NCBI GenBank assembly: GCA_047495785.1
Contig: JBLDXI010000019.1
Location: 3,038,001 to 3,102,000, forward strand
Source of the DNA: Lepidodermella squamata
Taxonomy: Eukaryota; Animalia; Gastrotricha
Length of the DNA: 64,000 nt
Direction: 5' to 3'
Both the position numbers and the translations under genes were made by a program. The notes beneath the pieces are model-generated. The model had not been told where the DNA came from. It worked only from the letters and a program-made list of their open reading frames with translations, and searched no databases. Below, in pieces: positions 79 to 51,623 of the stretch (position 1 is its first letter; each line of letters starts with the position of its first letter).

Positions 79-436
79 TCAGTCTTTGAATAATCCAGTG
101 TTCATCATTTTGCGAGCATAACTTTGCTGTAAAATGTAAAATGTTAGCTTCCCTCCACAGATATTTCTCGACTTCCATAACTCGAGGCACATATGCATTT
201 GAATCTCACGCCGTTTCGCTCGTATATGTCGTAAGAGGTCGGAGAGCAGTTGCAAGTTTTCATTTGCCATAGCTGTAGAAATTGCAGATTCTGTGGATAA
301 GAGAATAAGTGAAGGATAAAACAAATCGTAGGAAATAACTCAAATCTGTCGTCTGATCTCCAGATCTTGATTTACATGACACAATGCACAGTTTGGTAAT
401 AAGAACCAGGGAACACAATGTCGAAATAAGTTTCAT
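79..436 (-). CDS. Small secreted C-x9-C family protein A (minus-strand subfamily), 2 exons (436-340, 290-79)
   Basis: MKLISTLCSLVLITKLCIVSC signal peptide; phase-1 intron 339-291 (GT..CACAG, donor weak); exon 2 ends CLELWKSRNICGGKLTFYILQQSYARKMMNTGLFKD. Confidence 0.75.
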
Positions 437-1706
437 ATTCAAATAATTATTTAAATTATCTCTATTGAATTAAGAATGAGAGTGCGAGATCGCATAAGTT
501 TGCTTATATCCAGCGCGCACAGGAAACGCTCGACGAAATATGATCGACACCTTGGGTATATCGGTAACAAATTTCAGGTATCAGGTCTGGTAAGGTCCGT
601 TTTCTGGCTATTTCACAGACGTTTCGGCTGATGAAATTGGAACATATTCTTCTCATCTCGCGCACTCACTAAATATTATTGTCATCAAGGAACCCCAAAA
701 TCACTATCTAAAGGACCTCATTTCCGAAGTCTATGGGCGTGTGATGATATTACTCACCCCATTCACGTGAGTTCAGCGGGATCCGTGTCATTTGTCAGTT
801 TGAGAACATATAGAGACAATGATCATCAGATGATTACTCGTGTCTCGTGTCAACAAAAACTTCCGGCTTATTTCAAAATTTGTAGATCGAAAAATATTGG
901 TGCACGAAACATTCATTTATGTATGTCGTTTTTAATTTTTACCTTTGTCGGGTTGTTCCAGCTAAAATCAGCGCACTTTGCAAAAGAAACAGGTATCAAG
1001 CGAGGATGACGACGGTCAGAGCGCAGATCAGGCCCGTTGGCAAACGAGAACTGAGGAGGAAAACCCATTTCATCGAAGGCAGCGGAAACAAGGAACGTCC
1101 TCTTACTCGTGATAGAATTTCGACAATAATGAAATAGCAGTTTGCTTTGCTGGACTTGAAGACAACGAAGTATTTTCATCATTCATCCACATTTCTTAGC
1201 ACTGCTCTAAATGTCGAAATCGTATACATAACGTCGAAGATCCATTTGGTATTTACCTATCGCCTATCGACTGGTAAAATGACATAAACAAGGTTAAATC
1301 GGACTTTCCGATAGCCCCTGTGTCGAGATACGAGATTTCAATGCAGATATAACGTTCGTGGCGCGGAAGAACAAGCAATTCAAGCAAAAAACATAGTGCT
1401 AATGATAGGATATTTTTTGCTTGAAGTGCTTTCAATGTTGGCCTTAACTTGTCCTTAACTTGTCACGTCCATTTGAAATTATTTAAATCAGTTTCAGGCG
1501 TGAAAGCGGGAGATGTTCTGGTTTTAAATAAGTATTCCCGTGACACCGGAAGATAGCAGCTGGTCAGGCGCGTTGTTGATATTGAGGGTGAGAATTTATC
1601 GATTATTCTGCCCTCAGACAATGCTTTGAAATCGGTCTATACATGATTAATTTTATCTTAGATAGCCACGTTAGCCCGAGGTCTCAACTGGAATTTCGCA
1701 TCGATT

Positions 1707-2081
1707 ATGAAGCCGACGATTGTGCTCTTATCAGCTCTGTTCACCTTTTTTATTATTGAATCGGCTCGGACTGCTCCGTTACCACTAGGAGATGCTGAAA
1801 TCAACACAGAAGAGCAGTTGGCCAAACTAAGTGGGTAGAAGCTTTCTTCAAACATTTTATATTATATACTTTTTACAGGAAAAAAGGTTATGAAGATCAT
1901 TCAACGCCGCGATCTTGAGGCTCTGGCCCAGCTGGTAATAACAGCCAGGCACAGACAACGTCAAAATCGGATGCGAAAATGCGTTGATCAACTAGGTTCA
2001 GCATCCATTTGCAAACACACTGTTGCCTTCTATTTTTGGGCTCAGCTCTTAGCAAAGAATATTCTAGCTGGTAAACAATGA
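1707..2081 (+). CDS. Small secreted C-x9-C family protein B, 2 exons (1707-1830, 1879-2081)
   Basis: MKPTIVLLSALFTFFIIESARTAPLPLG signal/pro segment; phase-1 intron GTGGGT..TTACAG; CVDQLGSASICKHTVAFYFWAQLLAKNILAGKQ; AATAAA after stop. Confidence 0.85.
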
Positions 2082-2130
2082 TGATTTCATAATAAAATGT
2101 AGGTACTACCGAATTCCATAACCATCAGGT

Positions 2131-2476
2131 TTATTTGAGATCATTGCCTTGAAGTATTCTTCTAGCTATGAAGTTTTGCTGTAGATAAAACGGTACAGAT
2201 CCTCTGCAGAGTGATTCAGATTTGAGGATATCCAGACACCTCCTGTAATTTATCACCCGCAGTTCAGCTTTCAAAGCGATCAACTTATCAAAATTTTCAT
2301 CAGCCAGCATTCTGCTGATTATAGTTTCTAAAAAATGGAGTTGTTATAGATGAAAGCGACGATCGCGGTAGTAATCTCTTACTTATTTTAGCCGGGCGAG
2401 CAATAGAGGGCTTGGCAATCAGGAAAATGGAAGGTAAAACAAGGATGGCTAGCCGAAATGCGTTAGTAAAGGGCAT
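2131..2476 (-). CDS. Small secreted C-x9-C family protein C (exon 2 absent from ORF track), exons 2476-2383, 2327-2131
   Basis: TATATAA upstream (~2517-2524); MPFTNAFRLAILVLPSIFLIAKPSIARPAKI; intron GTAAGA..TTTTAG; KTIISRMLADENFDKLIALKAELRVINYRRCLDILKSESLCRGSVPFYLQQNFIARRILQGNDLK*. Confidence 0.85.
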
Positions 2477-3815: not shown

Positions 3816-5142
3816 ATGGATCACAGGGGTCGTTATTTTTACAACCAGGCTCCTCAATACCAGCATTTAGAGGCGATTGAAGATGCATCACCTGATTATG
3901 AGATTAACGAGCTCGAGAGTAGTACAAACACTCCTAGAATCGACGAAAATTCAGAGCTAAGGCAGCATAAACTGGTATGATTACTTTTCAGCGATCTCAC
4001 GTCATGCATTTGAGCTAAATTTCTAGTACCACGAGCTACTTCTAGCCATACACCGAGATGACATGCCAGAATTTGATAGATTGATCTACCTCACCTCGAA
4101 CATTCATGATTTAGGCTACGTCCTATTCAAACTTAACGGCGATGATATAGACCAAAGTGGCGATACAATCATCCACAAAGCAGCGAGAATGGGCCGGACG
4201 AATCAAGTTGCTAAACTCATGCACATTTACCTCAAAATGCATAGCGCTGAAGTGAGGGAAAATTCAGTTTCAAGAGTCATGTGCAAATTGCTGAACCGCA
4301 AGGGCGAGACGATTCTCCACTCAGCTGCAGCAGCTGGTCGGCCTCATGTCATCGAAACCATCTTTAAAACTATCTACTCCCACCAACCTCCGCCTGTTAC
4401 ACCAGACACAAGCTCCTTGAAGGACCGTCGCAAAAGTTTCCAGAGGGGTTCAAGCCGTAGTTCGGAACGAAGTGGGGTCGATATTGATGAATTCATCAAT
4501 CATCAACAGGAGCAGGTGGAGAGACGGACAGCTTTACATCTAGCGGCTAGTTACCAGCCTCTTGGATCGAATAACGCGACAGATATAGCGAACTACGTCA
4601 ATCAGGGCACCTACGGCGGGGTTAACTCCTCCCCCGGCTATGGCTACGCTTCCTCGTCCCGTAATTCTGGCCAATACATGGCTGCAGATATGCTGATTCA
4701 TCACGGCGCGAATGTTGACGAGATTGATATGCATGGTTTGAACGCGTTTCATCTTTCTGTGATTTATGGCAATCTCGAGGTTGCGAAACAGCTGTTTTCG
4801 ACTCAGCCGAGTTTGATTAACGAGGTCACGAGTGACGGCTGGCAGAGGACGCCACTTCATCTGGCCATTCAACAGGCACAGGCTATTTTTCAAGCCACCG
4901 TTGTGCCATCTTGCCAAACGTCATCGGCTACTTTGTTCCGCGGTTGTTCCCAGCAGCCTCAGTATAGCGAGTCTATGCAGCGAGTGTTGGACATGATTCA
5001 TTGGCTGTTGCAAAACGGCGCTGATCGCCAGAAGAAAGATGCAGCCGGCAGGTTGCCACAACATGTCTTGATCATCGGAGATGTCTCGCGAGAAAAGAGA
5101 GAACTTATCAAAGCTTTGAACCGTTTCGGACTTTATCAATAA
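3816..5142 (+). CDS. Ankyrin-repeat protein, copy 1 (exons 3816-3974, 4027-5142); lacks the DSGxxS motif
   Basis: About six ANK motifs (GDTIIHKAA, GETILHSAA, RTALHLAA, LNAFHLSV, RTPLHLAI, GRLPQH); exon 1 MDHRGRYFYNQAPQ joined in frame by GTATGA..TTCTAG intron; collinear paralog at 29385. Confidence 0.9.
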
Positions 5143-5181
5143 ATAATCTTTATTGTTTTCTAGCATTTTCTAATTTGAATC

Positions 5182-5990: not shown

Positions 5991-6341
5991 TCATGATTGA
6001 TCACTAATAATTCGTTGAGCTACCACTTGCTGCAGCATGTAGTACGGAACCTTTCTGGCGCAGATAGCCCTTGACTTGAGCAATTCAGTGCATCGTTGCA
6101 TTCGCAATTTCAGCCGTGCGACCTTAACCGTGCGGATAAAGGCGATAACTTTCACTGCTTCCTCGTTGGTAATAGCTTTCATTATCTTCGTTTCTAAATA
6201 TACAGATATAGAAATGGAATTGCGATATCGTTTTATCCCCATAACAAGCTTACTTATACCGCTGATCATCAAATCCCGTTCAGAATCCAGAGCGTAACTT
6301 ATCGTCAAAAGTAGAGGCAGGACCTTCAAGATCCCAGTCAT
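5991..6341 (-). CDS. Small secreted C-x9-C family protein D, exons 6341-6254, 6193-5991
   Basis: MTGILKVLPLLLTISYA signal; 60-nt phase-1 intron GTAAGC..TTTAG; CTELLKSRAICARKVPYYMLQQVVAQRIISDQS. Confidence 0.85.
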   Translation of the reverse strand: MTGILKVLPLLLTISYALDSERDLMISGISKLVMGIKRYRNSISISVYLETKIMKAITNEEAVKVIAFIRTVKVARLKLRMQRCTELLKSRAICARKVPYYMLQQVVAQRIISDQS

Positions 6342-6967: not shown

Positions 6968-8134
6968 CTATCCAATGAGACAAAGAATAGCGATGAGATT
7001 CGTTAGAAAGTAGGCTGTGAATGCAGCTGAAAAGGCGAAAAAGTCTATGAGTATATACAATTGGACCGGCCTCTTGATAAACCGAACGTGAACTCCCTTC
7101 TCAGCGATTTCTGGACGAAATGAAATGAAACCACACATCGCTGCTGCATAAGCAACGCAGGCTGTAGCCAGTACGGTTTGGCTCAGACTGAATGTTGCAG
7201 CGATCACTGGCTGGGGCGTTTTTGGCAGACTAGCCTGAACGTTGTCCTGCAGGACGAAAATCGATAACACTACAGTGCAGGCGAATGATGGCCTATCTGG
7301 CGCCTCAGCGGGTATGAGGAACGAAGAAAGAATTAAGAAGCTAAGGATCAAACTAGGCGCGTAAAGGCTCATCAAATAGTATTGAGGTTTACGCTTAAAC
7401 GGAAACTTGAAAATTGCCTCGGAGAAGTTAACTAAAGGCCTCCCGGAAGGAATAGAGCTATGAACGGTAGATCGCCAGGAATCATCGTGCTCCCACCCAG
7501 CATTGATGGGCATGAAAGGATAAGCAAAAGAAATATATTCAGTTTTAGCTATATAAGAATATCGATCCTCCTGTCTGAGTTCAAATATGAATTGGCACGT
7601 TTGTTTATCGAAAGGAAAGAGACTGACATCTTTAGTGCAATATGCTGCAAATTGTCCGCCAATAACTCCTGATACTCTCCCATTTTCTGCAAGGAACACC
7701 TTAACAGACCGTGCGAAACCATCAGTCATATCTGAGACGCCAAGGGAATTACTAGCATGAATAGACGGCCACCAGTAAAGGTTTGGATCTTCTTTTGTCA
7801 GCTCTTTAATTAAAACCGGCCACCGCACCTTACCAGAGCTAGAAATATTGCGATAGAGGTCTCGAATACATTCGGATTCCCATACGATAACTAATGAGCC
7901 CGCGATTGTGATCGTTTCTGCAAGGTCGTCGATTTCCACAAATTTCTTGGGTTGCAAGCTGACGGTGACTTCTGTTGGCTTAGCATCCAACTCCGTTGGT
8001 GAGTTGACAGTTGGTCCTACCCTACAGTTAGCCAAAATTGTATCGGTTGGCTTGAAATTCCGAACATCCACATCAGCTGCGAATGCTGAAGTGAGAAAAA
8101 TTGCCAAACTTGAAGCGCGTAGCATGCTTAGCAT
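6968..8134 (-). CDS. Intronless divergent Cys-loop (pentameric) ligand-gated ion channel subunit
   Basis: Signal peptide from M at 8134; RVGP, WWPSI, C-x13-C loop CTKDVSLFPFDKQTC, KRKPQYY then four hydrophobic TM segments; very short M3-M4 loop; no vicinal Cys. Confidence 0.9.
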   Translation of the reverse strand: MLSMLRASSLAIFLTSAFAADVDVRNFKPTDTILANCRVGPTVNSPTELDAKPTEVTVSLQPKKFVEIDDLAETITIAGSLVIVWESECIRDLYRNISSSGKVRWPVLIKELTKEDPNLYWWPSIHASNSLGVSDMTDGFARSVKVFLAENGRVSGVIGGQFAAYCTKDVSLFPFDKQTCQFIFELRQEDRYSYIAKTEYISFAYPFMPINAGWEHDDSWRSTVHSSIPSGRPLVNFSEAIFKFPFKRKPQYYLMSLYAPSLILSFLILSSFLIPAEAPDRPSFACTVVLSIFVLQDNVQASLPKTPQPVIAATFSLSQTVLATACVAYAAAMCGFISFRPEIAEKGVHVRFIKRPVQLYILIDFFAFSAAFTAYFLTNLIAILCLIG

Positions 8135-9139
8135 CGAGATGGACAATTCTAGCAATTTATCTACCGATATCGAGCGGGAAACTAAACAAACTGCAGATTT
8201 TAAAGGCAAAATTGACCATTGTTCCAATTAAACAACTAAAACCCGCATCACGAAGCACGTGCGCTTATTGCGGAAACGCAGTGATTGCTCATCACATTAT
8301 TGTACATCTTTTATTTACACAGGTACAGATCACATTATAAATGGAATATATATTTGACATTTTAAAAACCGTGGCAAAGTATTGGACCCGGATCAGCATT
8401 ATTTTCCAGGCATGATCTGCGCAGCGAACAATTATCGCACTGCTTCCGATGCCGAAGCAAACGTGAATTCGATGACAGTTTTAAAATTTAAATTTTTTTT
8501 AATTCTCTTCTGACCCAGGAGTCAGCCAACCGCAGTTATTGACAGAGAACATGGCGAACTCAAACTTTCCGCGCTCTATATTGAAAAGCGAAGAGGATGT
8601 CTATATGGGTGTCCAGTGAGCAACGCTACGCTCTTTATCTCATATTGAAATATCCCCGAGGTCAGAACGTTCAATAGCGCTGTGCATGAATCTAAGATGT
8701 CGGTTAATACTTGGCATTCCAGGTTTCGAAAGGGGGAAGAGAGAAGAGGGCTTCCTAAAAAGGGAGTGTCCTTTTGATTTTTCCATTGCAAGGATACAAT
8801 GGCTATAGCATAGTCTAATTTCATAAATCATCCATATTATCGGCGGATTACTCTACGCGATACCATAATATGAGCACGACGTAAAATCGTCCTGCATTTG
8901 CGTGATAGACAGATTCAATGATGGCCGCAGAAGCCATGAGAGCTTCCTTATTTTCTACCTGGACGAGCTATGATTTTCAGTTAAGCGGATTGCTGTAGGG
9001 AAGGAACACATGCGTGAACGTGACGGAATTCTTCGCGTTAATCAGAATCCTTTAAAATCGAGATGGCGCTTCAGTGTCTTCACAGAATAAAAGTATATAA
9101 AAGGCTTTAAAAACGGCCATTCTCATATTCTGTTAAATC

Positions 9140-9516
9140 ATGCACTACCCTTACTTCACCTTATTCACAGTCTGTCTTGCTTTCGCTACGGTTGCGAGCA
9201 AGCCTTTTGGGGGCGTCAAACGCGCAGATTCGCAAAATCTTAGTGAGATGAGTACGTTTTATATTATTTGTTATTGTGTCTCATCCTTAAACTTCAACAT
9301 CTTTTAGAAGGTTACATCGCTGATTTGTACGCTAGCAAAGACTTGAATTCGCTCTTTCAGCTTGCGAAGGTGCTTGAAAAAGAGCGACTGCTCCGGAAGA
9401 CGGAGAAATGTCAGCAATTCAAATCTCAGCGAGACATAAGACGATGCTTCGATGCCTTTGAGTTGAGTGTCGACGCTGGACCACGCTATGGCATGATAAG
9501 ATCATCAAATCTATAG
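9140..9516 (+). CDS. Small secreted family protein E (C-x11-C variant), exons 9140-9251, 9308-9516
   Basis: TATATAAAA at ~9094; MHYPYFTLFTVCLAFATVASKP; phase-1 intron GTACGT..TTTTAG; YIADLYASKDLNSL..CQQFKSQRDIRRC; AATAAA downstream. Confidence 0.8.
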
Positions 9517-9978: not shown

Positions 9979-10891
9979 GATGACAATAAGCTGGAAAAAT
10001 GTGCGTTATTTTCAGGATTTTTCATAATTCAGATAAATGATAGCAGGTCTCCTCTTTTAATCGATCTGATGTAAATATTTCAACTCGGCCTGTATAGAAA
10101 TTTCGTAATTGCTAACTTTTATTCCTAGCACCGGAGTGGTTCTTAATAGGAAAGCACTCTTCAATTCTCATTTTTTCTAACGCTACAGAAAATGAGTGAA
10201 TTATAGCCTTACTTCAATTTCTATAGATTGTTTCACTTCACCTCTAGTTGTCACAATAATATCAACTCGTTCTTTCGGTCATCACAATCTTTAACGCCGA
10301 GCAATACTCGCATAGGTCACATAGATTCTTGAAATCTATGGGGGCTTTTGGGGTTACTCCCAAGGGAGTTACTCACTTGGGGGTTACTCCCTTTGTAAAT
10401 AGCCAAACAATATCAACGTATCAACGATTTCGTAAATGATTTTTTCATTGAATTCTGATCTTTCCTGGGCGTTATGGCTCCTGGAATTAACGAGTTAATT
10501 AATGAAACATCGAATCGTAAAAATTGGCAATCCAGCGAAAACTGCCCGCCGCCCACAAAGAGTGGCCCGCCCTCTGTTGAATAGGCTGATATTGTGCTTC
10601 AGATGAATCGGCCATTCTAATTAATTACTAAGTACACTAGGATAAATGCAATAAGATAGGATTACGTCATCTCTAAGCCTACGTGACCACTTACTGGAAA
10701 TCGTAGGAATCGATATACGACACATCGAACATTCCAAAATTGATTAATCATGAACATGATCCGGATTTAGTAGCTGATATTACTGTCCTATATCCTATAA
10801 ATTCGCTATGGAATCTCGAGCCAGTACAAGTCATTAGAACTAATCTGCTCTTCGAAAGTGCATAAAGCTGAATTTTTACTGCAGTGCAGCA

Positions 10892-11211
10892 ATGTTTCTT
10901 CAGATCACGATAGTTTTTGCTCTCCTCAACATTTTGAATTCGAATGGAAACCTGATCCCATCAGGTGAGGCTGGCGTCGACAATCAAGTGATCAAGCTAG
11001 GTATGTAGGTATTCAATCTTGATAACAAGACATCTGACCAGTGCTTTGAATTTTAGAAAATTTGATCTCGGATTTGTATGCTAACAAGAACGTCGATTCA
11101 CTGATCAATCTGAAGAAAGCATTTGACCGAGAACGGCACCACCGAAGGTGCCGCAGTCTGGTCGTAGAATTCGATATTCGCAAATGCCTCAAGGGGAAAC
11201 GCGTTCAATGA
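10892..11211 (+). CDS. Small secreted family protein F (C-x11-C variant, not in ORF track), exons 10892-11000, 11057-11211
   Basis: MFLQITIVFALLNILNSNG; intron GTATGT..TTTTAG; ENLISDLYANKNVDSLINLKKAFDRERHHRRCRSLVVEFDIRKCLKGKRVQ*; clear paralog of E. Confidence 0.85.
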
Positions 11212-11434
11212 GACAAGCGGCGAGCTGGACTGAAATACCGCGATTGAACTCCAGGGTTTATGGGGACGAAAGATACATTTTACATAAAAGTGAAAAATAT
11301 TGACGACTGAGGTCGAAGGATGATAATAAATTGCCGCTGGTGCTTTGAACCTCATTCTGAATTTCTAGCATTGACTTAGTTTACTGGCAGTTTATGGTCA
11401 ATGAAAATAAGTCGGCCATGAAAATAAGTTTTAT

Positions 11435-11806
11435 TTATTGCTGGTTCGCTTTATTCCCCAGCAGAATCCGTTGAGCTAGTATTTGATGGCTGACATAAAA
11501 TGGGAGCTGGCCCTTGCAAATAGCTCGCGAAAATAGCTTTTCAATGCAATCTTCCAATCGCGCCTTGTTTTGCCTGATTTTAAGAGAATGAATCATAGCT
11601 ATGAGGTCCGACTGCTCACCATTTTCAATGGCTTTCTGAATCCGATCATCTACAGGAAAAACATGCGAATCATCGCATTCATTGATGAAGAAATTCCAGA
11701 GCTTACGTATCATGTATATCCTTGGAATCGGATCAACAAATGAGACCCCACAATTAGTAATGGTTGGTAATACAAATACAAGGAAGAGGAAATAGCAAAA
11801 TATCAT
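11435..11806 (-). CDS. Small secreted C-x9-C family protein G, exons 11806-11707, 11649-11435
   Basis: MIFCYFLFLVFVLPTITNC signal; 57-nt intron GTAAGC..CTGTAG; CIEKLFSRAICKGQLPFYVSHQILAQRILLGNKANQQ. Confidence 0.85.
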   Translation of the reverse strand: MIFCYFLFLVFVLPTITNCGVSFVDPIPRIYMIRKLWNFFINECDDSHVFPVDDRIQKAIENGEQSDLIAMIHSLKIRQNKARLEDCIEKLFSRAICKGQLPFYVSHQILAQRILLGNKANQQ

Positions 11807-12192
11807 TTTCTGCAGAATCAGATCTGGAGAAGCCTGAGATTTTAAATTACGAGAGTTAGAGTTAGACATGGCAAGCCAAGTCACGCTAATAATTGTGTAT
11901 TTTCATTGATTAGCCAGAACATATTTCCCTATTACTACTCCTGGATGAGCATACATTTCAAAGCCAAATTATTGAGGGCTATCACGTTTCACTTATTTAT
12001 GAGCTTCAGAAATCTGGCCCAATACGTGAGATGGGGTCTCTAAGGCTTGTTCATGAAAGCTGCATTCATCCTCAGTCTGAAATCTGACACTGAAACGCCT
12101 TTTCGCGTATCTAGGGTCTGAAAAACATATCAGTCTAAAAAATATCTTCAGAAATTAATTAGAAAATACAATCAAACATTGCGGTACATCTT

Positions 12193-12540
12193 TTATTGCG
12201 TATGCATAGCTCTACGAGCTAAAATCTGCGGCATAAAATAGAACCCTATTTTTCCCTCGCAGATTCTACGAGATTTCCAAATAAATTGACACAGTTCGAG
12301 CAATTTCTTGCGTCGGTGAAATCGAATAGATGAAGCCAGTTGACTGAGTTGGTCGTAACTTTTACTTTCGAACAGTGTTGCTATATGATTTTCTGCAACA
12401 AAAAACAGGTATGTCATTCCGATGTTGACTGAAATCTTACGAATATCAGCCACAGTTTCCAGTCTGCGATCCATGGGAAGGCATGAAACAGGCCAGTTCC
12501 AAAGGACTAAGCTTGACAAGATGCAACCGATGATTTTCAT
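12193..12540 (-). CDS. Small secreted C-x9-C family protein H, exons 12540-12441, 12392-12193
   Basis: MKIIGCILSSLVLWNWPVSC signal; 48-nt intron GTAAGA..TTGCAG; CQFIWKSRRICEGKIGFYFMPQILARRAMHTQ. Confidence 0.85.
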   Translation of the reverse strand: MKIIGCILSSLVLWNWPVSCLPMDRRLETVADIRKISVNIGMTYLFFVAENHIATLFESKSYDQLSQLASSIRFHRRKKLLELCQFIWKSRRICEGKIGFYFMPQILARRAMHTQ

Positions 12541-14192
12541 GTCGTTGAGCTTAGAATTGAACTACCTCTCATGTGCTAGCTGTCTGACTAAGCTAATAAT
12601 GATCAATCTAGGTATTGCGGGGTCATTGCGTGGCGCGGAGTCTGGACCTACCTCCGCCCAGCAGCTATCAGCTATATAGACATTTCGCTTGTGAAAACAA
12701 ACATATTTGTTGTCAAGAATTGATGTAAAATTGCGCTACTCATTGTAGGCGTGGTCATTGTTTTCATTATATTTTATTAATGATAGACGTTGGTCTTCGA
12801 ACACATTGTAGGTGAGCACAACTGCTAAGCGGAATCGGAAAATTCTAGTAGAGAGTGTGATTCATTTTTCCACTACTTTATCACTTCAAATTTTCCTGCG
12901 CCATTTCCAAACACACACGTGATCACGAGCGCACAATTAAGCAAAAATCACCCATGGGTGAAATGAAATGTTGTGAACAACGTCCCACATTTTGAATAAC
13001 GTACAAATGAAAACAGTTACGTATGACAATGTCCCGGAGTATCGTTTTGGACGCGAATCAAGTTTTTGCTTCACATCTTTCACCATGTCCACGCATAATG
13101 GAATTAGGGCTCGAATCGAATGTTAGCTTAGTGGTAAAAGTTAGTTGGTCAAATCCATGCCACTTTGTACGCTGTCAAACAAAAAAGATAAATGGGCGAC
13201 AACAGCGGGACATCGTACTTTTGAAAAATTTTGTCCATTCGATCCACGAGGGACGCGTCATGTTCAAAAACGGTGCTGCGACACGCAATTAGGTATGTCA
13301 AACTAATCAGGACTCTGGTAGACGATGATTTGTTGGCCAATGTCATTACTCCCACATATTGAATACACCACGAGCAAAAGGCCTATAATTGATCGAGAGA
13401 TATCGAGGCGCGGGGAATGTAATAGGCTGGTAACGAATTTTATGAATTTGAAGAAATAGATATTGGAGGGCGGTCTCTGAATGTTTGATGTCCGGTCGTG
13501 ATACCCCCTACTCGAGAACATTGTATTATGAGAGATTTCAGGCAAGCAGTGGTTAATGAATCGCATCAGGATATAAGGTGTCAGATTTACAAGCACACGC
13601 CAGTAGTCCATTAATGAATTTGTCCAGTTTTCTGGTTTCGAGTTGTCAAACAAAAGTCTCCCATTAACGTCAGAATATATTCAACTACAGACAATAGTAA
13701 TCAAATCTAGCATATTTATATAGAGGAATCAATCACCGCTGGATGCCTAAACGTCTATGAATATCGGTTTGTCGCTACTATACGTTGTTAAAGATGTCAC
13801 GCGACATCTAGCCAGGTTTGATGCGTTGTCAATAATTCAACACGGCCAAGTAATTAACAGCGTTATTTATACCTCATTTATCCCTTTGAAAGCTCCACAT
13901 TCAAAGCTATGCTCTATATTCTGACATCTGCGGCGCAAGATTTGATTGTGTGACCGTGTCTAATTTTCAGAATTTTCAAAACATTTATGCTTAGCGAGTG
14001 ATGCTTGATGTCACACGAATGGAGAACCGCTAATATGTTTGGCTAATCTCAATTACGGCTCTGCGGATCGTCACCGATCACGGCTAATGAGTGGTGGCAA
14101 TTTAAAGCTGATATCATTACGATCGAGCCAGAACGCAAAATCACTTTTGCCTTCGATAACTTGTACAGCTAATATTTCTGAATATTTTGGAA

Positions 14193-14573
14193 ATGCATAC
14201 AATTTTCACAATCGTGCTCGTGATCGCCATTATTTCAGCTCTGAATGCAAAGGGAATGCCAATGGAAAGAGTAAATATATTCACGAAATCACAGCTCAAA
14301 GATTTCAGTAAGTTCGACTCCCAGCTTTATTCCAAATAATTTACTGACAATTGAATTCCCCTTTAACCAGGAAACAATCTTGCTATCCTCAGTAAAGGCA
14401 GCGATGGAAGAGCTGTTCTGCTTTCACTTCTTTTTGCTTATAAACGTCGCGAGAAGCAGTTTCGCTGGGAAAAGTGTATCGAAAGACTGGGATCACGAGC
14501 AGTTTGCAATAACACCATTGCCTTTTACATTTGGGCGCAGATGCTTGCGAAAGAGATTATGGCTGGGAACTGA
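14193..14573 (+). CDS. Small secreted C-x9-C family protein I (not in ORF track), exons 14193-14307, 14371-14573
   Basis: MHTIFTIVLVIAIISALNAKGMP; intron GTAAGT..AACCAG; CIERLGSRAVCNNTIAFYIWAQMLAKEIMAGN*. Confidence 0.88.
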
Positions 14574-15975
14574 ACTAATTCGAGCGAATTCGAGTTCCAA
14601 GTCCTAGACTAGACTGGAAAATATAGCACACTGTGTCTTTCTACACCATATCACATCATGCGACAGAATAAAAAATATTGTTATTCAAAATACCTATTTT
14701 ACGCATTTTTCCCGTTGAAACACAATCGGCTAGATCTTAATAAGTATTCATAGTGACGCCGAAGTTGAACGCTCAAGATGAAATCCAACAGTGCAGCCTG
14801 CAGGAATAGTTCTTACACGCTGAATTTTGGGTTTTCGACAAGGCTTTGGTGAATGAGGACAATAGGCGAAAATGAGCAAGTTTTACCGCAAGAACGACAA
14901 GTTTTTATTTTAGATTTATCTCGAGACTCAATTTCGGCGTCACTGTGGCCTTCTTTATTCCATTGCGCATTTTAGGTATATCCGCTTCTGAGTCGAAAAC
15001 GTTTAACAAGTCTTAAACAGGAGCCAACGTTGCCAACGGTGCTACCGCGGGAAACGAGGATATCGTACCGCCCAGTTTGCAAAGCCAAGGTTGAAAATCC
15101 CAAAAAGACCATAGGGGAACATTTGGTCATAGAATATGGTCCAGAAAATAACCCCTAGTTGGAGGATTGTATTCGATAGCAGGCAACAGGGACAAGACAT
15201 TTTTGCCAAAGCAGATGCTAATGAATAAAGTTTGCTCCCCATCCATCACATACCTTCATTCTGCACATATTTCACAGACATTCGTTCTCCCCAGACACAT
15301 GTCCGTAAATTACGGGGAGAAAACTTTAATCATTAGTTCTAGCATTATTTTGGCGACTCCGACTTCAAAACTGGCTCATTTCAGGCTTTTAGAACAAACG
15401 AAGTCTCCAATCTTGTGGTCAGTCGGGAGCAGATGTCCTATGAGTATTTGCGGTTAAAAAGCTCTTCACTGGTGAGAGAAAGACATGATACCTTCTACGC
15501 CTGCCTGTGTACAGCCTTTGTTGTGGTGTCTGGTCCACTTTTACAGAAGCTGACCAAGCTGAGCAAAAAACCCGTTCAACCGTCAGTTACGCTTCGTGTT
15601 CAATTCGTCCCGGTAATCAACATCGTTTTTCATTTTTTTCTATACCATACCGTCTGATATTAAACGAATCAATGATTGTAATAAATAAGCAATACTTGGC
15701 GGGGTAATAAAATGAGATCACATTTTATAATCCGCCAACCCATCAGTCAACTTGTTTTACGTTGACAAATTTACGGCAGACATAGAATCAGTTTGTTCCA
15801 GCATTTAATGCGATTATATAAATTGGACCAGTTGAAGGTCTACGCTCATGCCACGTATGCGTATGGGATGTTCAATGATGAAAGGAATTTGAACTACCTA
15901 TTTAAGGCCTGCGGGTGAAGGAAGGGAAGGCATATCGGGATTGCAGTGGTACATTTTTATTGTGAATTACTCAAG

Positions 15976-16349
15976 ATGATGCATTCCGTTGTTATTGTTG
16001 CGACCCTATTGTACACCAGTCATGCAGCTCCCCTTCCAGTCGGGGGAAACGAGCAGAACGCTACTGGGCTAATGGAGAAATTAGGTATATTAGTTGATAG
16101 CTTACGGCTTACGTCGCTAAAACTGGTAAATGAAATTTTTCACCAACAGAATATCGCGTGAAAATGCTGGTTCAGCAGAAAGACTTGAAAGCTTTAGCAG
16201 TCTTGGTGCGAGATGCTCGCGAACGTCAGCAGCAACTCCGCATGGCTAAATGTCTTGCCGAGCTTCATTTTTCAGCGATTTGCAACCAATCGGTCGGCTT
16301 CTACCTTTGGGCCCAAATTCGAGCGAGGGACATTCTCTACGGCAACTAG
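15976..16349 (+). CDS. Small secreted C-x9-C family protein J, exons 15976-16084, 16150-16349
   Basis: MMHSVVIVATLLYTSHAAPLPVG; intron GTATAT..CAACAG; CLAELHFSAICNQSVGFYLWAQIRARDILYGN*. Confidence 0.88.
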
Positions 16350-17156
16350 ACGCTTTTCCTCCGGGAAGTTAAAAATTTGATGTTGTGTCGAGTGTCATCC
16401 AAGAATAATGTCTCAAAAGGGTCACAATTGCTTACAGAAAAGAAGGAATATCCAAGTAGAATAAATTGGTACTTGATATTATTTGATCATAATAATTTCC
16501 CGATTTGCAGCAATGTATGATTCGCAAATCAGCTTGGAACTGTTCCCGGGTAAATGATTACAGAATGACTTCCATTAATATGCGTAATCAACAATCACTA
16601 ATCTGCTTTACCCTGATAGAGGCTGTTCTTCATTTCGTTCTTCGGCCAAAAATGATGCCGCCTTCACTTGATGGGCCAAATTTGCGACGACATGGCATGT
16701 CCGTATACCATGTTAAAAAGCTACAGGGAAAAAAGTATAACACCTCCGGAAAAAATGCATTGAAATGGACCCGAACGCCCCTTCATTTGGTGTTAATGAA
16801 ACTTAATCATGTTGTATGAGCTGGAATGAAGTGATCCAAATTGGTCAGATTTTCACTAATTTGCTTTTAATTCAATCAGCCAAAGGCCTTTCGATCTGAA
16901 ATAGGAGTCGAGTGGCAGGGTAACAGAAGCTGAGTATTATGCTGCCCATAACAGACTTAGCTGTAAATTTTGAAATAAAACGGAAACATGTTCATCAACT
17001 GCCGTCTACTCAGTTGGCTGATGTATACTTGTATGCCGGCTAATTCCTATTATCTTGATGATTCTTTTTCTCGATCCTAATTTTAGCATTCGCTTTCAAT
17101 CGCTTTCGAATCACTTTCAAATAAAAACGTTGGATCTCTGTCGTTTTGTCGTAATA

Positions 17157-26831: not shown

Positions 26832-27180
26832 ATGAAAGTCTACTTGATAGTATTACTAGCATTTTTCGCGGCAGTAAATGCATCACCGCTACATATCGGG
26901 GAAACTACTGAACTTGTTATGCTAAGTAAGCAGTGTAACCATATATTGTAGCCCTCTTTAATAATGTTAATCCATTATAGGGCAACATGTCGCTAAGCTG
27001 GTTGAAAAAAGCGATACAGAAGGGCTAACCTTGTTGGTTTCAGCGGCACGACACAGGCAGCAGCGAATGCGCATGGGCAAATGCTTGGCCAAACTTGGTT
27101 CGTGGTCCATCAGTAACCACACAGTTGGCTTCTACTTGTGGGCTCAACTTCTGGCAAGAGACATTATGGCTGGAAACTAG
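26832..27180 (+). CDS. Small secreted family protein L (second Cys replaced by Ser; not in ORF track), exons 26832-26925, 26981-27180
   Basis: MKVYLIVLLAFFAAVNASPL; intron GTAAGC..TTATAG; CLAKLGSWSISNHTVGFYLWAQLLARDIMAGN*. Confidence 0.88.
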
Positions 27181-31806: not shown

Positions 31807-32288
31807 ATGCTCCCTTGGTCTGCGTGATTCCAACTGTCTGCATCGCTTGCGTAGATCCGGTGTTCAATCATCCGGCGTTCCTCGTCAGACCTACCTTTCC
31901 GAGCTAAGGAAGCAAAATCGTAATAATCAACTTACTTTTTCAACGATTGAACCGGTTTTAAAGAGTACTTCGTTGAAAAGTTGCGGATGTTGGCAGAGAG
32001 GATTTGGTGAAAGATTTGCTACATGCTGTTCAGAACGAACGCATCAGCCGAGCCGCAGCCAAATAAGATAAGATTATGATTAAGCGTGGCAAGACCAAGA
32101 GATCAAGGAAGCCTGACAACAATTCAGCCAAGATTCCGTCACCCAGAACCACTAACCTAGAGACTAATAACAATCAGCCAACACCCTTAAATCCACACGA
32201 CCCCCACGTTTATCGGCAATCATCGGCAATCATCGGCAATCATCAAAATGGCTTTGTGTTACTCGCTTCAGCTCAGAAAAGCTTTTAA
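31807..32288 (+). pseudogene. Pseudogene copy of gene K
   Basis: Aligns with 25182-25614 including upstream GTAAATATTAATATTTG; early TGA, donor changed to GG, frameshifts. Confidence 0.8.
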
Positions 32289-33201: not shown

Positions 33202-34314
33202 CTAGCGAAAAAGCTGTTCAAAATGCTGGCCGCCATGCGCAATGCATGATCGAACGCGCTCCTGCCAATTTCTCCGCACATTAGCCAACGCTTCCTGCGT
33301 AACCTCTCCACAGGCGACTCGGATTCTTTCCTTCAGTTCATCCATACTGTCGATTCGCCCCCGATAAACTTTGTCTTTGAGGTGACCCCATAGGTAAAAA
33401 TCGAGTGGCGTTAGATCCGGGGAACGAGGAGGCCACGGTACCGGACCTCCGCGCCCAACCCACCGGTGCGGAAATCGTCGATCCAACCATTTGCGCACCT
33501 TGAGAGACCAGTGTGATGGGGCGCCGTCCTGCATAAACATGCTTCTAGGACCCACACGTTCTCGAATCAGCGGCCACAGCCATTGAACGAGCATCTTCAA
33601 ATATTTCGCGCCATTAACACTGCCCTCGAAAAAATAGGGACCAATTATCGTGTCGCGAAAGATTCCACACCAAACGTCGACGCGTTCTGCACCCTGGTCT
33701 TGATTATCAATTATCTCATGTGGGTTGGATGTCGACCAGTGACGGAAGTTTTGCACGTTCACCTTACCACTTAAGCGAAATTTAGCCTCATCGCCAACCA
33801 GTATGTCCCACACGAAACCGATTTCAGATTCACATTGAGCGTCAAACCACCCCGAAAAATTTAATCGCAGTTCGAAATCGGCGGGCTTAAGTGATTGCAC
33901 ATGGCGCAATTTATAAGGGTGAAATCCATTTTTTTTCAAAATTAATCTGATTCTTTCAGGGCTATAATTCAGCTCTCGACTGGCATCGCGAAGTGACTTG
34001 TTGGGATGTTGCGTAAAGTAATTGATAACCACATTTTCGACTTGATTCGTTGGAAGTTGATTTCTAGGCAAATCCGTCATCACCCCTAATGCAGAAAAAA
34101 TAATTCCGATTAATCACCTTCGTGAGCTAAGTAATGAATTATTACCTGTGTTTACAAGGCGCGTGTAGTTTCTTTTAACCGTGTTAACAGATGGCTTCGG
34201 TCTAGTAGGATGTTTAGATCGAAATAATCGTGCCGCCAGACTCGCATTCTTTTTCTCATGATATAGCAGCGCCATTTCCGCGCGTTCGACAGGTGAGTAG
34301 TAAGAACCAGGCAT
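33202..34314 (-). CDS. DD41D transposase, exons 34314-34146, 34085-33202
   Basis: N-terminal HTH region; GDEAKF, QDGAPSH, WPPRSPDLTPLDF with 41 residues between 2nd and 3rd Asp; ends GGQHFEQLF. Confidence 0.93.
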
Positions 34315-35693: not shown

Positions 35694-36228
35694 ATGAACG
35701 TCTACTTGATTGTTATTCTAACGTGTATCATGACAGTAAACGCATCACCTCTACCAGTCGGGCAAAGTACGGAGAACAGTGTGGTCCAACTTGCTATGCT
35801 AAGTAAGCTTTTTAACCATGTATTTTAGCCCCCATCAATTAACTATTCCATCTTTCATCGAATACTAGCCATGGCTGGCCGAGCTCGAAGAATAGTGAAA
35901 AAATCGGGAAATTATTCGAGGGGGCTTTTATTCGAGGTAATTTTAGAACCCCGAACCATCACATCATCACTTAAATCAAGCTGATAAGCTGGTAGGAGCA
36001 GCTTTACACATGTTTTATTTCACTGTAGGGCAACATGTCGCTAAGCTGCTTGAAACAAGAGACATCGAAGGGATAGCCTTGCTGGTTTCAACGGCACGAC
36101 AAAGGCAGCAGCGAATGCGAACGGGCGAATGCTTGGCCAAACTGGGTTCATGGTCGATCTGGAACCACACCGTTGGCTTCTACTTGTGGGCCCAACTTCC
36201 GGCAGGAGACATCATGGCTGGAAACTAA
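35694..36228 (+). CDS. Small secreted family protein N (second Cys replaced by Trp), exons 35694-35802, 36029-36228
   Basis: MNVYLIVILTCIMTVNASPLPVG; intron enlarged to 226 nt by an insertion; CLAKLGSWSIWNHTVGFYLWAQLPAGDIMAGN*. Confidence 0.8.
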
Positions 36229-40359: not shown

Positions 40360-40734
40360 ATGAAATTTTATTTGCAAGTTTTACTAACATTATTCATATC
40401 CTCTGTGATAGTCAACGCATCACCTCTACCCATCGGGAAAAGTACCCAGAATAGTGCAATGGAACTTGCCATGTTTAGTAAGCTTTATAAGCCTAGAATG
40501 TAGCACCTGTTAATGATGTGATTTCCCAATATAGGGCAACATGTTACTACTCTGGTTGCGAAACGCGATATCGAAGGGCTAGCTTTGTTGGTTTCTGCGG
40601 CACGACAAAGACAGCAGCGAATGCGCATGAAGAAATGCTTGGCCAAACTTGGCTCTTGGTCGATCTGCAACCACACAGTCGGCTTCTACTTGTGGGCTCA
40701 ACTTTTGGCACGAGAAATTATGGCTGGAAACTAG
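40360..40734 (+). CDS. Small secreted C-x9-C family protein O (not in ORF track), exons 40360-40477, 40535-40734
   Basis: TATAAAT at ~40302; MKFYLQVLLTLFISSVIVNASPLPIG; intron GTAAGC..ATATAG; CLAKLGSWSICNHTVGFYLWAQLLAREIMAGN*. Confidence 0.9.
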
Positions 40735-42590: not shown

Positions 42591-42885
42591 ATGTATTATT
42601 CAGCCATCAAATTGTTCACTTGCTTGCTGGTGTTCGAATGCGCTTTCGCTCAACTTTCGTTGCAAGTGCCCCAAGCCAGCCATGGATCGCTGCTGGTGGA
42701 TTTGAGTATTTTTTCATTCCTATTTCCCATCTCATTGTTTTTAACGGCAATTCGTTCAAGAGAACGGCATTGACCAGATGACAGCAGCTCGCAATATTAT
42801 TCTGCTGCTGGACTTCATGAAAGCGGTAGGGAAGGAACGAATCGAAAGGCAGAAGCTGAAGTGTCTAAAAAATTGGTGCAATTGA
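42591..42885 (+). CDS. Small secreted family protein P, divergent, possibly frameshifted in the A-run at ~42867-42872 (exons 42591-42705, 42761-42885)
   Basis: TATAAAA at 42483; MYYSAIKLFTCLLVFECAFA signal; phase-1 intron; KNGIDQMTAARNIILLLDFMKAVGKERIERQKLKCLKNWCN*. Confidence 0.65.
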
Positions 42886-43922: not shown

Positions 43923-43964
43923 TGCTACTTTTTTGCACCTGCTTTCTCCTTACGAGTCATTGCG

Positions 43965-47050: not shown

Positions 47051-48081
47051 TGCCAAATGTTCATTGCCTTGCAGTTAAATTATAACTTGAATCGCTGAAT
47101 TGTTGATGTGACGTATATCCCCAAAATGCAAAACCCGCCGCAGTAACTAACTGCAGGATTATAGCTTGATCCGCTTTGGAAAGAATAGCATTGATGATAT
47201 CGGAGAGCATTGGGTATGTGTTACGCCAGCGTGGGCAGCTATCATGCGACCCACAGCAACAGGACTCGAGCTGTTGAGCTATAAGCGACAAGTTAGTCGG
47301 TTAGTTGTTGAAAGATGTCCATTTCTGGACACCCAGGAAGACCGAGTATTGTGATTTCTAAAACTAATTAAAGAAAGGCAATTATTAACAAGATTATGTT
47401 ATGAGGAAATTTTCTAGTGTCAGTCGGTATGAGAGTTACCTGGATTCGCAGAGACATTGGGAGCGTGCAACGTAAACTCGATGCATTAGTTGCATGATCG
47501 GCGGATTGCTTCTTGAGCAGAAACCCAAGACATTATTTTGGAAGGAAGATAGTAGTGTAGCAAGGCAGCTATACGACTGTCGAACCGCGACCAATGTTTC
47601 GTGGATTGTCATATCATTCAGTGCGCTAAACATGTCATTTCGAGACAAAGACAGAGCAAAGCTTATTCATCATTAGTCAAATATTATTGTCTTTTTCCGC
47701 GCTAAAAATTGATTACAGACTTTTCGATGAAAGATAACGCAAGCTTTTTTAAATTTAAGAAAAATAATTGCTTATTAATAATTATTCAAACATTATTGTT
47801 TATTTTTCGCGCTAAAAAGGGGGTTTTGCGACGAATCCACGTGCATAGAAATGACAGCTGAACTTGCTTGGATTGCTGCCACCAGGATGAAGTTGTTAGC
47901 GGCACCCTGGATCGCAAGCAACGACGATTCATCATGCGCAGCTACTGAGATGAACACGCTGGCAGGCCTATAAAACACGGCTAAAACTGATGAAAAATTC
48001 ATTCTTTCTCAGCATCAACTTTTCATCAAAAACAATTTCATTTTCGAATCTTTCATCAGTCGTTTAATTCAAAGCTAAAGA

Positions 48082-49174
48082 ATGATGTTCAAGCTTACGA
48101 TAGCAGCCTGCTTAGTAAGTTTTAGAATTAATTTCTGATCTTGATTAACATTTTATGAATCAATTTTTGAAATAGGTGGCAGCAGTCATTTCGAATCCCC
48201 TCATGGAAGCCATGAGAGGCGAAGAAAACTACCAAGAAGCCAAGCGTGGTGAGGAAAACTACCAGGAGGCCAAGCGTGGCGAAGAAAACTACCAAGAAGC
48301 CAAGCGCGGTGAGGAAAACTACCAGGAGGCCAAGCGTGGCGAAGAAAACTACCAGGAGGCCAAGCGTGGTGAGGAAAACTACCAAGAAGCCAAGCGTGGT
48401 GAGGAAAACTACCAGGAGGCCAAGCGCGGTGAGGAAAACTACCAGGAGGCCAAGCGTGGCGAAGAAAACTACCAGGAGGCCAAGCGTGGTGAGGAAAACT
48501 ACCAAGAAGCCAAGCGTGGTGAGGAAAACTACCAGGAGGCCAAGCGTGGCGAAGAAAACTACCAGGAGGCCAAGCGTGGCGAAGAAAACTACCAGGAGGC
48601 CAAGCGTGGCGAAGAAAACTACCAAGAAGCCAAGCGCGGTGAGGAAAACTACCAGGAGGCCAAGCGTGGCGAAGAAAACTACCAGGAGGCCAAGCGTGGT
48701 GAGGAAAACTACCAGGAGGCCAAGCGCGGTGAGGAAAATTACCAAGAAGCCAAGCGTGGTGAGGAAAACTACCAGGAGGCCAAGCGTGGCGAAGAAAACT
48801 ACCAGGAGGCCAAGCGTGGCGAAGAAAACTACCAAGAAGCCAAGCGCGGTGAGGAAAACTACCAGGAGGCCAAGCGTGGCGAAGAAAACTACCAGGAGGC
48901 CAAGCGTGGTGAGGAAAACTACCAGGAGGCCAAGCGCGGTGAGGAAAATTACCAAGAAGCCAAGCGTGGTGAGGAAAACTACCAGGAGGCCAAGCGTGGC
49001 GAAGAAAACTACCAGGAGGCCAAGCGCGGTGAGGAAAACTACCAGGAGGCCAAGCGTGGCGAAGAAAACTACCAGGAGGCCAAGCGTGGTGAGGAAAACT
49101 ACCAGGAGGCCAAGCGCGGTGAGGAAAACTACCAGGAGGCCAAGCGTGGCGAAGAAAACTACCAGGAGGCCTAA
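48082..49174 (+). CDS. Prohormone/neuropeptide-like precursor, 343 aa, 32 x GEENYQEA separated by KR (exons 48082-48114, 48176-49174)
   Basis: TATAAAA at ~47968; spliced signal peptide MMFKLTIAACLVAAVISNP via GTAAGT..AAATAG; 30-bp repeats differ only at synonymous positions. Confidence 0.92.
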
Positions 49175-51254
49175 TCATTTTGATTCAACTCGACAACAGA
49201 CTTTGTAATTTATTCCCCTGCAAGGGAAGAGACATGATCTAATTTCTTCAAATATTCACTCCGATTCATTTTAATTGCTTCCATCTTATTAATCATAAAT
49301 TCTTATAAAAAAACCATTCTCATTGGTGGTTGGCAAAATATAATATCTGTTGAAATCTGTTATGCAAAACTATAAAATCGTTCTACCACGGCAATAAATA
49401 ATGCAGTTACTATTTCTAACACGCTAAACTTGTTTTTTGAAAGATTAAGATCAAGGAGAGAGCAATAAAGCTTGTAAAGGTGTAGCACAGCTGCGACCAC
49501 TGGAAGTACAGGGTGTAAGGATGTGCTGGCCGGCATCGCGCCATCGAACTAACTAGCTTGTGTGATAATTGTGTGATAATCAATTAGGCAGTGCGATGTT
49601 CGCATTAGTTATTTCTCTATGATATTTAAGGCCATGAATGGCAGATCCTCAATGTTCGATTCGTTCTCAACTCTCAACAAAGTAGTAAAGAGTAGTGCCT
49701 GGCCAAGTCTTCACATTTCCCAGACACAGGGTGAGCCGCCATGGGTGACCACACCTGCGAAATTGCAGCACGAAGTAAATATCGCGACTTCCGCACTAGA
49801 ACAGTGTGCCGGAATAAAAACAAAAGGCGTAAAACTAACTTTTTGCATCTTCGCCAAGTCAGTCGCGTGCCTGATCGCTAGAAAAAAATTTGAACGCCAG
49901 TTTTTTCTGCGCAAGTCGCGATATTTAATACACGCGATATTTCACAGAATTTGATTCCGAATGGCAAATTCGACTCTAACTCGAACAGGATGCCTCCAAA
50001 ACACCGTCATTGGCATTTCTCACCGTTAAAGGGCTGATAAAAATTGGGCCGCCATTGGGTGCTTTGCTGCATCGGCCATGCCGACGATACCGAGATCATT
50101 CACGGGCATCTGGGTTCCTCACAACAATGAAGCGTTGCTACTGCGATGGTGAAGCAGGAATTAGAAGTGGCATTTTCCGCGCGGTACCACACGTTCAACA
50201 GCCGACACTTTTAGAGCCTTAGAGCCAGGATGAGCTAGCGATTATTCAAGCGCTTCGGCAAAATTTTCTTGGTTCCCATTAGACTCGAGGGTAGTTTCGG
50301 CTCTAATTACTGAAATTCTCGTTACCTCTCGTTACCATGAGTACAAGTGCGTCAAGCAAATTGCCAATTCTTGTAACCTCACGCCGTGAATCGACTGCGG
50401 TACCCTCACGTTTGACAGCAACATTATGTTTCCGCTGTTTCGGGTCAAAGTCTATCGTCACCGCACTTGGTGACTTGGTCGCTTTGTCGCCTGTCGGCTG
50501 AGTCGAAAGGCCAAAAAAAGTTTCATAGTCAGTCATTCATAGAACAATAGTAACAGGCGTCGAAGCGGACAAGTGGCTAAGTGCAACCGATTTTTTGGGA
50601 TTTTGTGCGACCGTGCGGCGCTGTGCGCGACGCTAGTCCAGCGATACCGGCCGCTCAAAGTCTGGGAAAAGTTTCTTATTCCCATTTGCACGGAATGATA
50701 GACGACGATACGCCCTCGTACAATCCTTGTTACGAGTAGCGATGACAGTAGGCTGAAAATCCTGAGAGTGTGTTTAAATATTCGATATTTTCGATATTTT
50801 CGATATTTTCTCGATACAAAGACAACACGCAAATATATTCAGGACAGAGAAACTTGTTTTTTTAGTTAATTTAATTACTTAGGATTGGACGAATTCTTAT
50901 TTTCATAGTGTCTATCATGTCACTCAAAGTAAAAAGTCAGACATATCATTTAAATTTCGAGCAGTGAGAAGGCTATCAAAGTAACAAAATTTATATCATT
51001 CCTGGACATTTGAACGTTTGCGACAACTTAGTTTATTAATTAGCTTATGAAGGAAGTATGACAGGCTTCTCGGGAATTAGGCGACAGGATATCTAAAGAA
51101 CAAGACCGAAGAACACTTCTAACAGCAAATTAGATACGTTCCATCTGTTTCAAGTCGGAAAATTCGCAGAAACGCAAAGACATAACAGTAGCGAGGTTCA
51201 AGTTAATAAAACTATAAGAGGCTGGATGTAAACGTATTTTCGGCATGTTGCGCC

Positions 51255-51623
51255 ATGAAGTTAAGGCTGAGCTTCATAATCTTGAGTATTTTTATAATGA
51301 GCGTACCTTCCGTTACTTCCAGCTCTCCATCCAACTTGGCTCTCGAGAAGCGACTCCATGCTGTTAGTAAGTAAGCAAATAGTCTCGCTCTATGCTGTCA
51401 CATCTCTTCCCAATGCTGTCTAGGGAATCGCGTGAGTAAGCTGATGGAAATAGGCGATTCAAACAATCTCAATGTATTGATCAAAGCCTTCCATCGCAGC
51501 ATATTGCGCAGGCGGATGAAGAAATGCGTAACTCAACTCGGCTCTTATGCTGTTTGCAATCACACAGTTGGATTTTACTTGTGGGCCCAAATGCTGGCTC
51601 GAGATATCATGGCTGGAAACTGA
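51255..51623 (+). CDS. Small secreted C-x9-C family protein Q, exons 51255-51366, 51424-51623
   Basis: TATAAG at 51213; MKLRLSFIILSIFIMSVPSVTS; intron GTAAGT..GTCTAG; RRRMKKCVTQLGSYAVCNHTVGFYLWAQMLARDIMAGN*. Confidence 0.9.

Follow-up and report, generated by a model that had tools for sequence, protein, structure and literature searches.

A 64,000-nucleotide (nt) stretch of the Lepidodermella squamata genome (contig JBLDXI010000019.1, positions 3,038,001 to 3,102,000 of the forward strand; hereafter the window) carries, between its positions 79 and 51623, a cluster of two-exon genes that belong to a large, expressed and spliced gene family, which is maintained by purifying selection and has no characterised relative detectable by the sequence and fold searches described below. 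We infer, with a probability of roughly 55%, that the family encodes folded, cationic, secreted helical mini-proteins with an extracellular binding or ligand role. The window is animal DNA of ~40% G+C in which introns are short and bounded by GT..AG.

Gene structure and transcription of the cluster

The original prediction, made from the letters of the window, held that 16 two-exon genes lie here, each with a signal peptide and a phase-1 intron, and an exhaustive search of ATG, donor and acceptor combinations yielded such a model at all 16 of the start or stop coordinates it had named. In these models, exon 1 (88–136 nt) encodes a hydrophobic signal sequence and ~10–25 more residues, the GT..AG phase-1 intron measures 48–65 nt, except in the gene at 35694 where it reaches 226 nt, and exon 2 is a single coding exon of ~65 codons. 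Twelve of the genes, which we term core members, share a C-terminal module consisting of C-x9-C and then x3-[VLI]-x-[FY]Y-x3-Q-x2-A[RKQ]. A six-frame motif scan found this module at 11 of the listed places and a profile scan found it at all 12. The cysteine spacing proved exactly as predicted, with the second cysteine replaced by Ser in 26832 and by Trp in 35694, and the motif past the second cysteine is exact in 11 of the 12 genes, 2131 being the exception. Profile A1, built from the 12 module-bearing exon-2 peptides, matches these genes at E values of 1e-22 to 7e-35, scores that are circular because they come from the same peptides; independent support for the module is provided by at least 138 further genome loci and 63 public proteins that match the same profile.

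The claim that all 16 genes form one family could be upheld in part. Beyond the twelve core members, the next-best profile matches are 9140, 10892 and 42591, which align weakly over the first half of exon 2 only (E 0.01–0.2) and end in differing short Cys-containing tails. The sixteenth gene, 25182, is not counted as a member because it has no profile match, lacks cysteines and possesses a paralogue of its own at 31815–32162 on the plus strand (47% identity over 120 residues; putative secreted, Cys-free and Lys-rich), and by sequence it probably represents a separate small family. A pseudogene and a gene fragment that had been reported in addition were not located in the window by tblastn with the core family (E<0.01). 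The genes, identified throughout by their lower coordinate, are as follows.

79–436, minus strand: core member; exons 436–340 and 290–79 with a 49-nt phase-1 intron (a 103-nt alternative intron, 375–273, is also possible); belongs to the minus-strand clade, having FY-x3-Q without Trp
1707–2081, plus strand: core member; exons 1707–1830 and 1879–2081, 48-nt phase-1 intron
2131–2476, minus strand: core member; exons 2476–2383 and 2327–2131, 55-nt phase-1 intron; motif Gln replaced by Asn
5991–6341, minus strand: core member; exons 6341–6254 and 6193–5991, 60-nt phase-1 intron
9140–9516, plus strand: divergent relative; exons 9140–9251 and 9308–9516; E 0.012 to profile positions 3–36; core exon layout and N-terminal helix pattern with a different tail, C-x11-C
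10892–11211, plus strand: divergent relative; exons 10892–11000 and 11057–11211; C-x11-C tail
11435–11806, minus strand: core member; exons 11806–11707 and 11649–11435
12193–12540, minus strand: core member; exons 12540–12441 and 12392–12193, 48-nt intron
14193–14573, plus strand: core member; exons 14193–14307 and 14371–14573
15976–16349, plus strand: core member; exons 15976–16084 and 16150–16349, 65-nt intron
25182–25614, plus strand: doubtful member; exons 25182–25317 and 25373–25614; core-like layout, Cys-free and Lys-rich; no profile match
26832–27180, plus strand: core member; exons 26832–26925 and 26981–27180; second Cys replaced by Ser
35694–36228, plus strand: core member that may be decaying; exons 35694–35802 and 36029–36228, 226-nt intron; second Cys replaced by Trp, motif Arg by Gly
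40360–40734, plus strand: core member; exons 40360–40477 and 40535–40734; exon-2 product folded in silico
42591–42885, plus strand: divergent relative; exons 42591–42705 and 42761–42885; N-terminal helix pattern kept, truncated tail ending C-x4-C; E 0.15–0.23
51255–51623, plus strand: core member; exons 51255–51366 and 51424–51623

Evidence of transcription comes from RNA run X1 (2015), a small contig set from one sample, which was compared with the 10800–16400 stretch and the five genes it contains. Cover in X1 is confined to exons, as expected of complementary DNA (cDNA), and gene 10892 has a poly(A) tail at 11349 followed by a cDNA-synthesis adaptor. Joints in X1 contigs skip 56 nt in gene 10892 and 65 nt in gene 15976, both with GT..AG ends, and in gene 12193 contigs end exactly at 12392 and 12441 with loose ends that carry the other exon. 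Each of these three junctions agrees with the sequence-based prediction, which confirms splicing in three of the five genes tested. The other run examined, X2, gives even cover across the stretch, the pattern expected of DNA. The nematode SL1 and a rotifer spliced leader were looked for and are both absent.

Family size, relatives and selection

Searching the 121-Mb assembly with profile A1 reduced 324 first-look candidates to 150 scored matches, all at E≤1.3e-8, which are distributed over 32 contigs, mostly in arrays, and are free of internal stops in 148 cases. With at least 150 loci, the family ranks among the largest of this animal genome. The cluster foreseen at 79–51623 is real and at the same time not confined to the window, given that two members lie just upstream on the same contig and four more ~120 kb downstream. 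Twenty fetched genome stretches contributed 71 further exon-2 matches, and we sampled 70 loci, the window's 12 included, for which E was ≤1e-10 and the match reached the end of the profile. Models of all 70 begin with a hydrophobic N-terminus and 50 have a phase-1 intron of ~48–67 nt; another 11 are intronless, all of them from one subfamily on a single contig (C3).

In a maximum-likelihood tree the copies group by genomic cluster, requiring 11 label changes compared to a mean of 29.6 when labels were shuffled (none of 200 shuffles was as low), and on this tree the family expanded mainly via local tandem duplication, the mode of growth that had been proposed. The minus-strand and plus-strand genes of the window form two separate clades, with 14193 unresolved; the former clade extends just left of the window and the latter takes in the four copies ~120 kb to the right. 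Two contigs, C25 and C26, also share collinear duplicated segments with the same members in the same order, one pair at C25:2023000–2028000 and C26:288000–294000 (loci L024/L025) and a second at C25:2217000–2226000 and C26:499000–509000 (L020/L021), in which some copies are protein-identical while the rest are not. The segments represent old duplications, segmental or homeologous, and not identical haplotigs; they somewhat inflate the copy counts given above.

We estimated selection by the Nei-Gojobori method on 44 paralogue pairs with synonymous divergence (dS) of 0.03–1.0. The ratio of nonsynonymous divergence (dN) to dS is 0.44 in the N-terminal half of exon 2 versus 0.13 in the C-terminal module, pairwise averages that could miss positive selection at single sites, and together with alignment A1 these values bear out the earlier impression that the N-terminal halves are the more diverged. 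For the L024/L025 copies on C25 and C26, dN in exon 2 is 0–0.013 at a dS of 0.23–0.36, which argues that individual paralogues, and not merely the family as a whole, have been preserved. The family is thus under purifying selection.

Relatives exist outside this genome, all of them nameless where we looked. An exhaustive hidden Markov model search of 1.84 billion representative sequences returned 63 proteins at E≤1e-3, including 11 that reach E≤1e-10; one is a false match to a repeat protein and the remaining 62 are 44–201 residues long, and those of full length combine a signal sequence and helices with the terminal module of the family. None of the matches lies inside a larger protein, which indicates that the module is a stand-alone domain. 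We looked up 20 of the clusters, and all 20 derive solely from ENA metagenome assemblies or Logan read-archive contigs, with no name and no NCBI or UniRef accession. On the metagenome contigs, the relatives have ordinary eukaryotic genes as neighbours (INTS1, ribosomal protein S2); they lack introns and can occur in tandem. The INTS1 of one such contig is 49–66% identical, piecewise, to the L. squamata copy, so the organism it comes from is a relative.

Searches for a characterised family were uniformly negative. Pfam gave no match at E≤10 for eight exon-2 products or at E≤1 for 62 members, a word-index search of 5.8 billion proteins gave nothing, a sequence profile run against the Protein Data Bank (PDB) matched only de novo designed helical bundles, and neither the motif strings nor expansions of secreted families led to anything relevant in the literature. 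By every test applied, then, the family is undescribed: it is absent from Pfam, from the PDB and, for the 20 clusters looked up, from NCBI and UniRef, in keeping with the original view of an unrecognised, lineage-restricted secreted family. Neither of the two outcomes named in advance as refuting that view, a match to a characterised family or a lack of spliced transcripts, was obtained. Invertebrates commonly have taxon-restricted families of small secreted proteins, and the present one is for now a well-documented orphan.

Predicted fold and competing readings

To predict the fold we ran AlphaFold2 with family alignments on a public relative (P0001) and on one exon-2 product from the window (40537–40731, gene 40360). 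The P0001 model has a predicted local distance difference test (pLDDT) score above 90 over residues 50–123; the window model has a pLDDT of 92.4 and a predicted template modelling (TM) score of 0.70, with helices at residues 2–8, 12–38, 41–44 and 52–62. Both models place the basic cluster and the first cysteine inside a continuous long helix, and in the window model the second cysteine falls in a short helix past a two-residue turn, making a disulfide between the two plausible. Foldseek found no PDB match at E≤0.001 for either model, so the suggested pairing of AlphaFold with Foldseek gave a confident helical model lacking a structural counterpart in that search. The best VIA-align Z scores, 5.0 and 4.2 for the two models, fall short of the level that the tool itself gives as noise for helical proteins, and searches of the ESM Atlas by features and by shape gave TM scores of at most 0.51 on generic helices, or no match. 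Judged from the models, these fold matches are background-level generic helical hairpins. A homodimer prediction, run without controls, scored 0.00, a value that speaks neither for nor against binding.

The chemistry of the mature proteins, computed with a crude signal-peptide cut, is strongly cationic. The 16 window proteins comprise 59–106 residues with a net charge of +2 to +13 and an isoelectric point (pI) of 9.2–10.6; 12 of them have two cysteines, 26832 and 35694 have one, 11435 has three and 25182 has none. Among 48 full-length public relatives, the median net charge is +7 and the median pI 9.6.

Under the reading we favor, each gene would give rise to a precursor of ~100 residues from which the signal peptide is removed to leave a strongly cationic product of 60–90 residues (pI 9–10.6). 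The exon-2 product would fold as one domain in which a short helix and a ~27-residue helix are followed by a tight turn bearing another short helix and by a C-terminal helix, packed back via conserved FY-x-W / IM residues. Of the C-x9-C pair, the first cysteine lies where the long helix ends and the second in the short helix of the turn; the two are most likely joined in one disulfide that staples the turn. The C-terminal module would then be the structural core and probably the common binding face, with the faster-evolving N-terminal helices conferring paralogue-specific specificity. Their role is probably extracellular, in binding or as ligands, and local tandem duplication would add copies that purifying selection then keeps. 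If so, the family may represent a new small disulfide-stapled helical scaffold, and learning its binding target would explain a substantial slice of the secretome of the lineage.

The strongest competitor, in our estimate considerably less probable than the mini-protein reading and yet far from negligible, is a prohormone in which a convertase cuts after R-x-x-[K/R] before the first cysteine to release a ~32-residue peptide (an 11-residue disulfide ring plus an amphipathic helix), the N-terminal half being a pro-region. The basic clusters that had been noted ahead of the first cysteine are indeed present: among 68 copies from this genome with a parsable module, Arg or Lys occupies position -4 in 61 (90%) and Lys or Arg position -1 in 54 (79%), and a dibasic pair lies within 12 residues upstream in 53. 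In addition, the C-terminal module is conserved far beyond the rest, and a near-invariant Gly close to the C-terminus is followed by Lys or Arg in 13 of 68 copies. Set against this, the P1 residue is mostly Lys rather than Arg, just 13 of the 68 have the full R-x-[KR]-R site, and most copies end in G-N, G-Q or G-S-E and are not amidatable. The basic residues also sit within a helix that is confidently predicted to be continuous; those at -4 and -1 fit a minimal convertase motif and one face of a helix equally well. Moreover, 150–300 hormone genes would be unprecedented, and Pfam detects neither calcitonin nor any other hormone family.

What favors a folded mini-protein over a prohormone is, first, that the whole exon-2 product is modelled confidently as a single domain. 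Second, the N-terminal half retains a D-x3-L-x2-L helix pattern, which reaches distant public relatives, and evolves under purifying selection. Third, 9140, 10892 and 42591, which are intact or, in the case of 10892, expressed, keep the N-terminal half while having lost the loop module. The proposed release of a C-terminal looped peptide is accordingly weakened but alive: the single modelled domain and the conserved N-terminal half speak against it, whereas the conserved basic residues at -4 and -1 fit it.

A number of points weigh against the mini-protein reading. For short helical hairpins, AlphaFold can report high confidence even where no true tertiary fold exists; that the proteins are secreted, that they form the disulfide and where the mature chain begins are all things we infer; and the conserved basic residues at -4 and -1 of the first cysteine also resemble a convertase site. 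Two intact copies, 26832 and 35694, do without the second cysteine, and genes 11435 and 14193, two of the five tested, have no RNA cover in the single small run X1. Nor did the sampled cluster neighbourhoods reveal an informative or recurrent partner gene.

An alternative that differs from the favored reading in target only, and which we regard as improbable, is host defence, with the folded cationic helical proteins released onto surfaces or into the gut as antimicrobial or membrane-active effectors. Small size, a secretion signal, amphipathic helices, large tandem arrays and the consistently high positive charge and pI of own and public members are all compatible with such a role. So are TATA-box promoters, which typify regulated or inducible genes: in the 200 nt before 62 family genes (from the window and loci L006–L025), TATAAA is found in 21 upstream regions versus 5.8 expected, concentrated 46–60 nt before the ATG. 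By contrast, selection is strongly purifying, pairwise dN/dS gives no sign of diversification, old paralogue pairs are unchanged at the protein level, the module contains near-invariant polar residues (Ser, Asn, Gln and Gly), and neither Pfam nor VIA-align detects similarity to known antimicrobial families. The same upstream regions show a weak enrichment of TGTCAC (12 of 62 versus 2.4 expected), and no tissue-diagnostic element was found in them.

The idea that these are chance open reading frames (ORFs), or else decaying copies that a repeat element has spread, has only the high copy number and retroelements near some clusters in its favor and is already refuted by spliced, polyadenylated RNA, dN/dS well below 1, intact frames in 148 of 150 scored loci and an architecture conserved in other organisms.

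The family was also compared with known systems. Were the product processed, it would resemble calcitonin, CGRP and amylin (IAPP; PF00214) in having a disulfide ring, then an amphipathic helix, cut out after a basic site. In those hormones, however, the ring is C-x4/5-C, compared to C-x9-C in 68 of 68 copies here (and 48 of 55 public proteins), and the C-terminus is amidated, whereas here just 13 of 68 copies have G[KR] after the module; Pfam shows no match to them, and the present family has hundreds of copies and an upstream half that is predicted to be part of one fold with the 'peptide'. Insulin/relaxin, CHH/ITP, defensins and saposin-like proteins have patterns of at least six cysteines, as opposed to 0–3 in the mature window proteins, and likewise give no Pfam match, in line with the earlier statement that the cysteine pattern does not fit insulin, calcitonin, defensin or CHH families. 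The twin Cx9C (CHCH) proteins of the mitochondrial intermembrane space share the spacing within a small helical protein, but they have two such motifs, each within one helix and paired between helices, and no signal peptide; here a single Cx9C spans a helix end and a turn, a signal peptide is present and Pfam finds no CHCH domain.

Cestode antigen B/HLBP and mite group-5/21 allergens are examples of taxon-restricted tandem families whose small secreted products are helical. Their genes consist of two exons, the first of which carries the signal peptide, and occur in tandem multigene arrays; the mature proteins are helical and of ~8–10 kDa. This two-exon, helical, tandem design is shared with the family described here; both groups lack the disulfide module, belong to far smaller families and are not matched in Pfam by our sequences. 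Der p 5 is the only structural match, and a weak one (Z 4.1, root-mean-square deviation 8.5 over 79 residues), within helical noise. Finally, cationic chemokine-like and antimicrobial mini-proteins are comparable in being small, basic, secreted, disulfide-stabilised and clustered in tandem. The family here differs in being all-helical, with a single disulfide, no homology to them and purifying rather than diversifying selection.

Gene neighbourhood and other features of the window

ORFs elsewhere in the window encode Cys-loop receptor, ankyrin, AMOP and Tc1/mariner sequences. The first of these, an intronless Cys-loop receptor-like ORF of 419 amino acids (6968–8227, minus strand; Neur_chan_LBD and Neur_chan_memb domains), lies inside the cluster, and similar ORFs adjoin family members in three other sampled clusters. 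A link between the two gene families was considered and the co-location put down to chance, because the receptor-like family is enormous (~2,300–2,500 first-look candidates, with more than 100 paralogues at E<1e-13) and has its big arrays, on contigs C23 and C54, apart from the clusters of the secreted family. Other clusters have as neighbours (ORFs at L007:1993–3456, L008:4072–5871, L009:3413–4330 and L009:8165–9154) a two-pore K+ channel (K2P), a gene with an ANF-receptor domain and two nuclear-receptor genes, and also long terminal repeat and long interspersed element retroelements (L010, L018). These clusters lie in regions rich in expanded receptor families.

A more speculative proposal, to which we assign little probability, is that the 150–300 proteins constitute a diversified repertoire of secreted ligands, each combining a conserved, disulfide-stapled docking face with variable helices for specificity, that pairs with an equally inflated receptor family and makes up a lineage-specific system of extracellular recognition or chemical communication based on a new fold. 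Candidate receptors would include the intronless Cys-loop receptor-like genes, which number more than 100 and of which one lies inside the window's cluster.

Interspersed with the family are two paralogous single-exon ankyrin-repeat genes of ~360 amino acids, at 4063–5142 and 29653–30738, both on the plus strand. A Tc1/mariner-type transposase ORF with DDE_3 and HTH_Tnp_Tc3_2 domains occupies 33202–34083 on the minus strand. Composition in the interval 48000–49200 is strongly skewed (AT skew 0.27), and several frames of both strands hold long ORFs there. Downstream of the cluster, a 402-amino-acid ORF at 57420–58628 on the minus strand contains an AMOP domain (E 1.3e-5) and is probably an exon of a larger extracellular protein.

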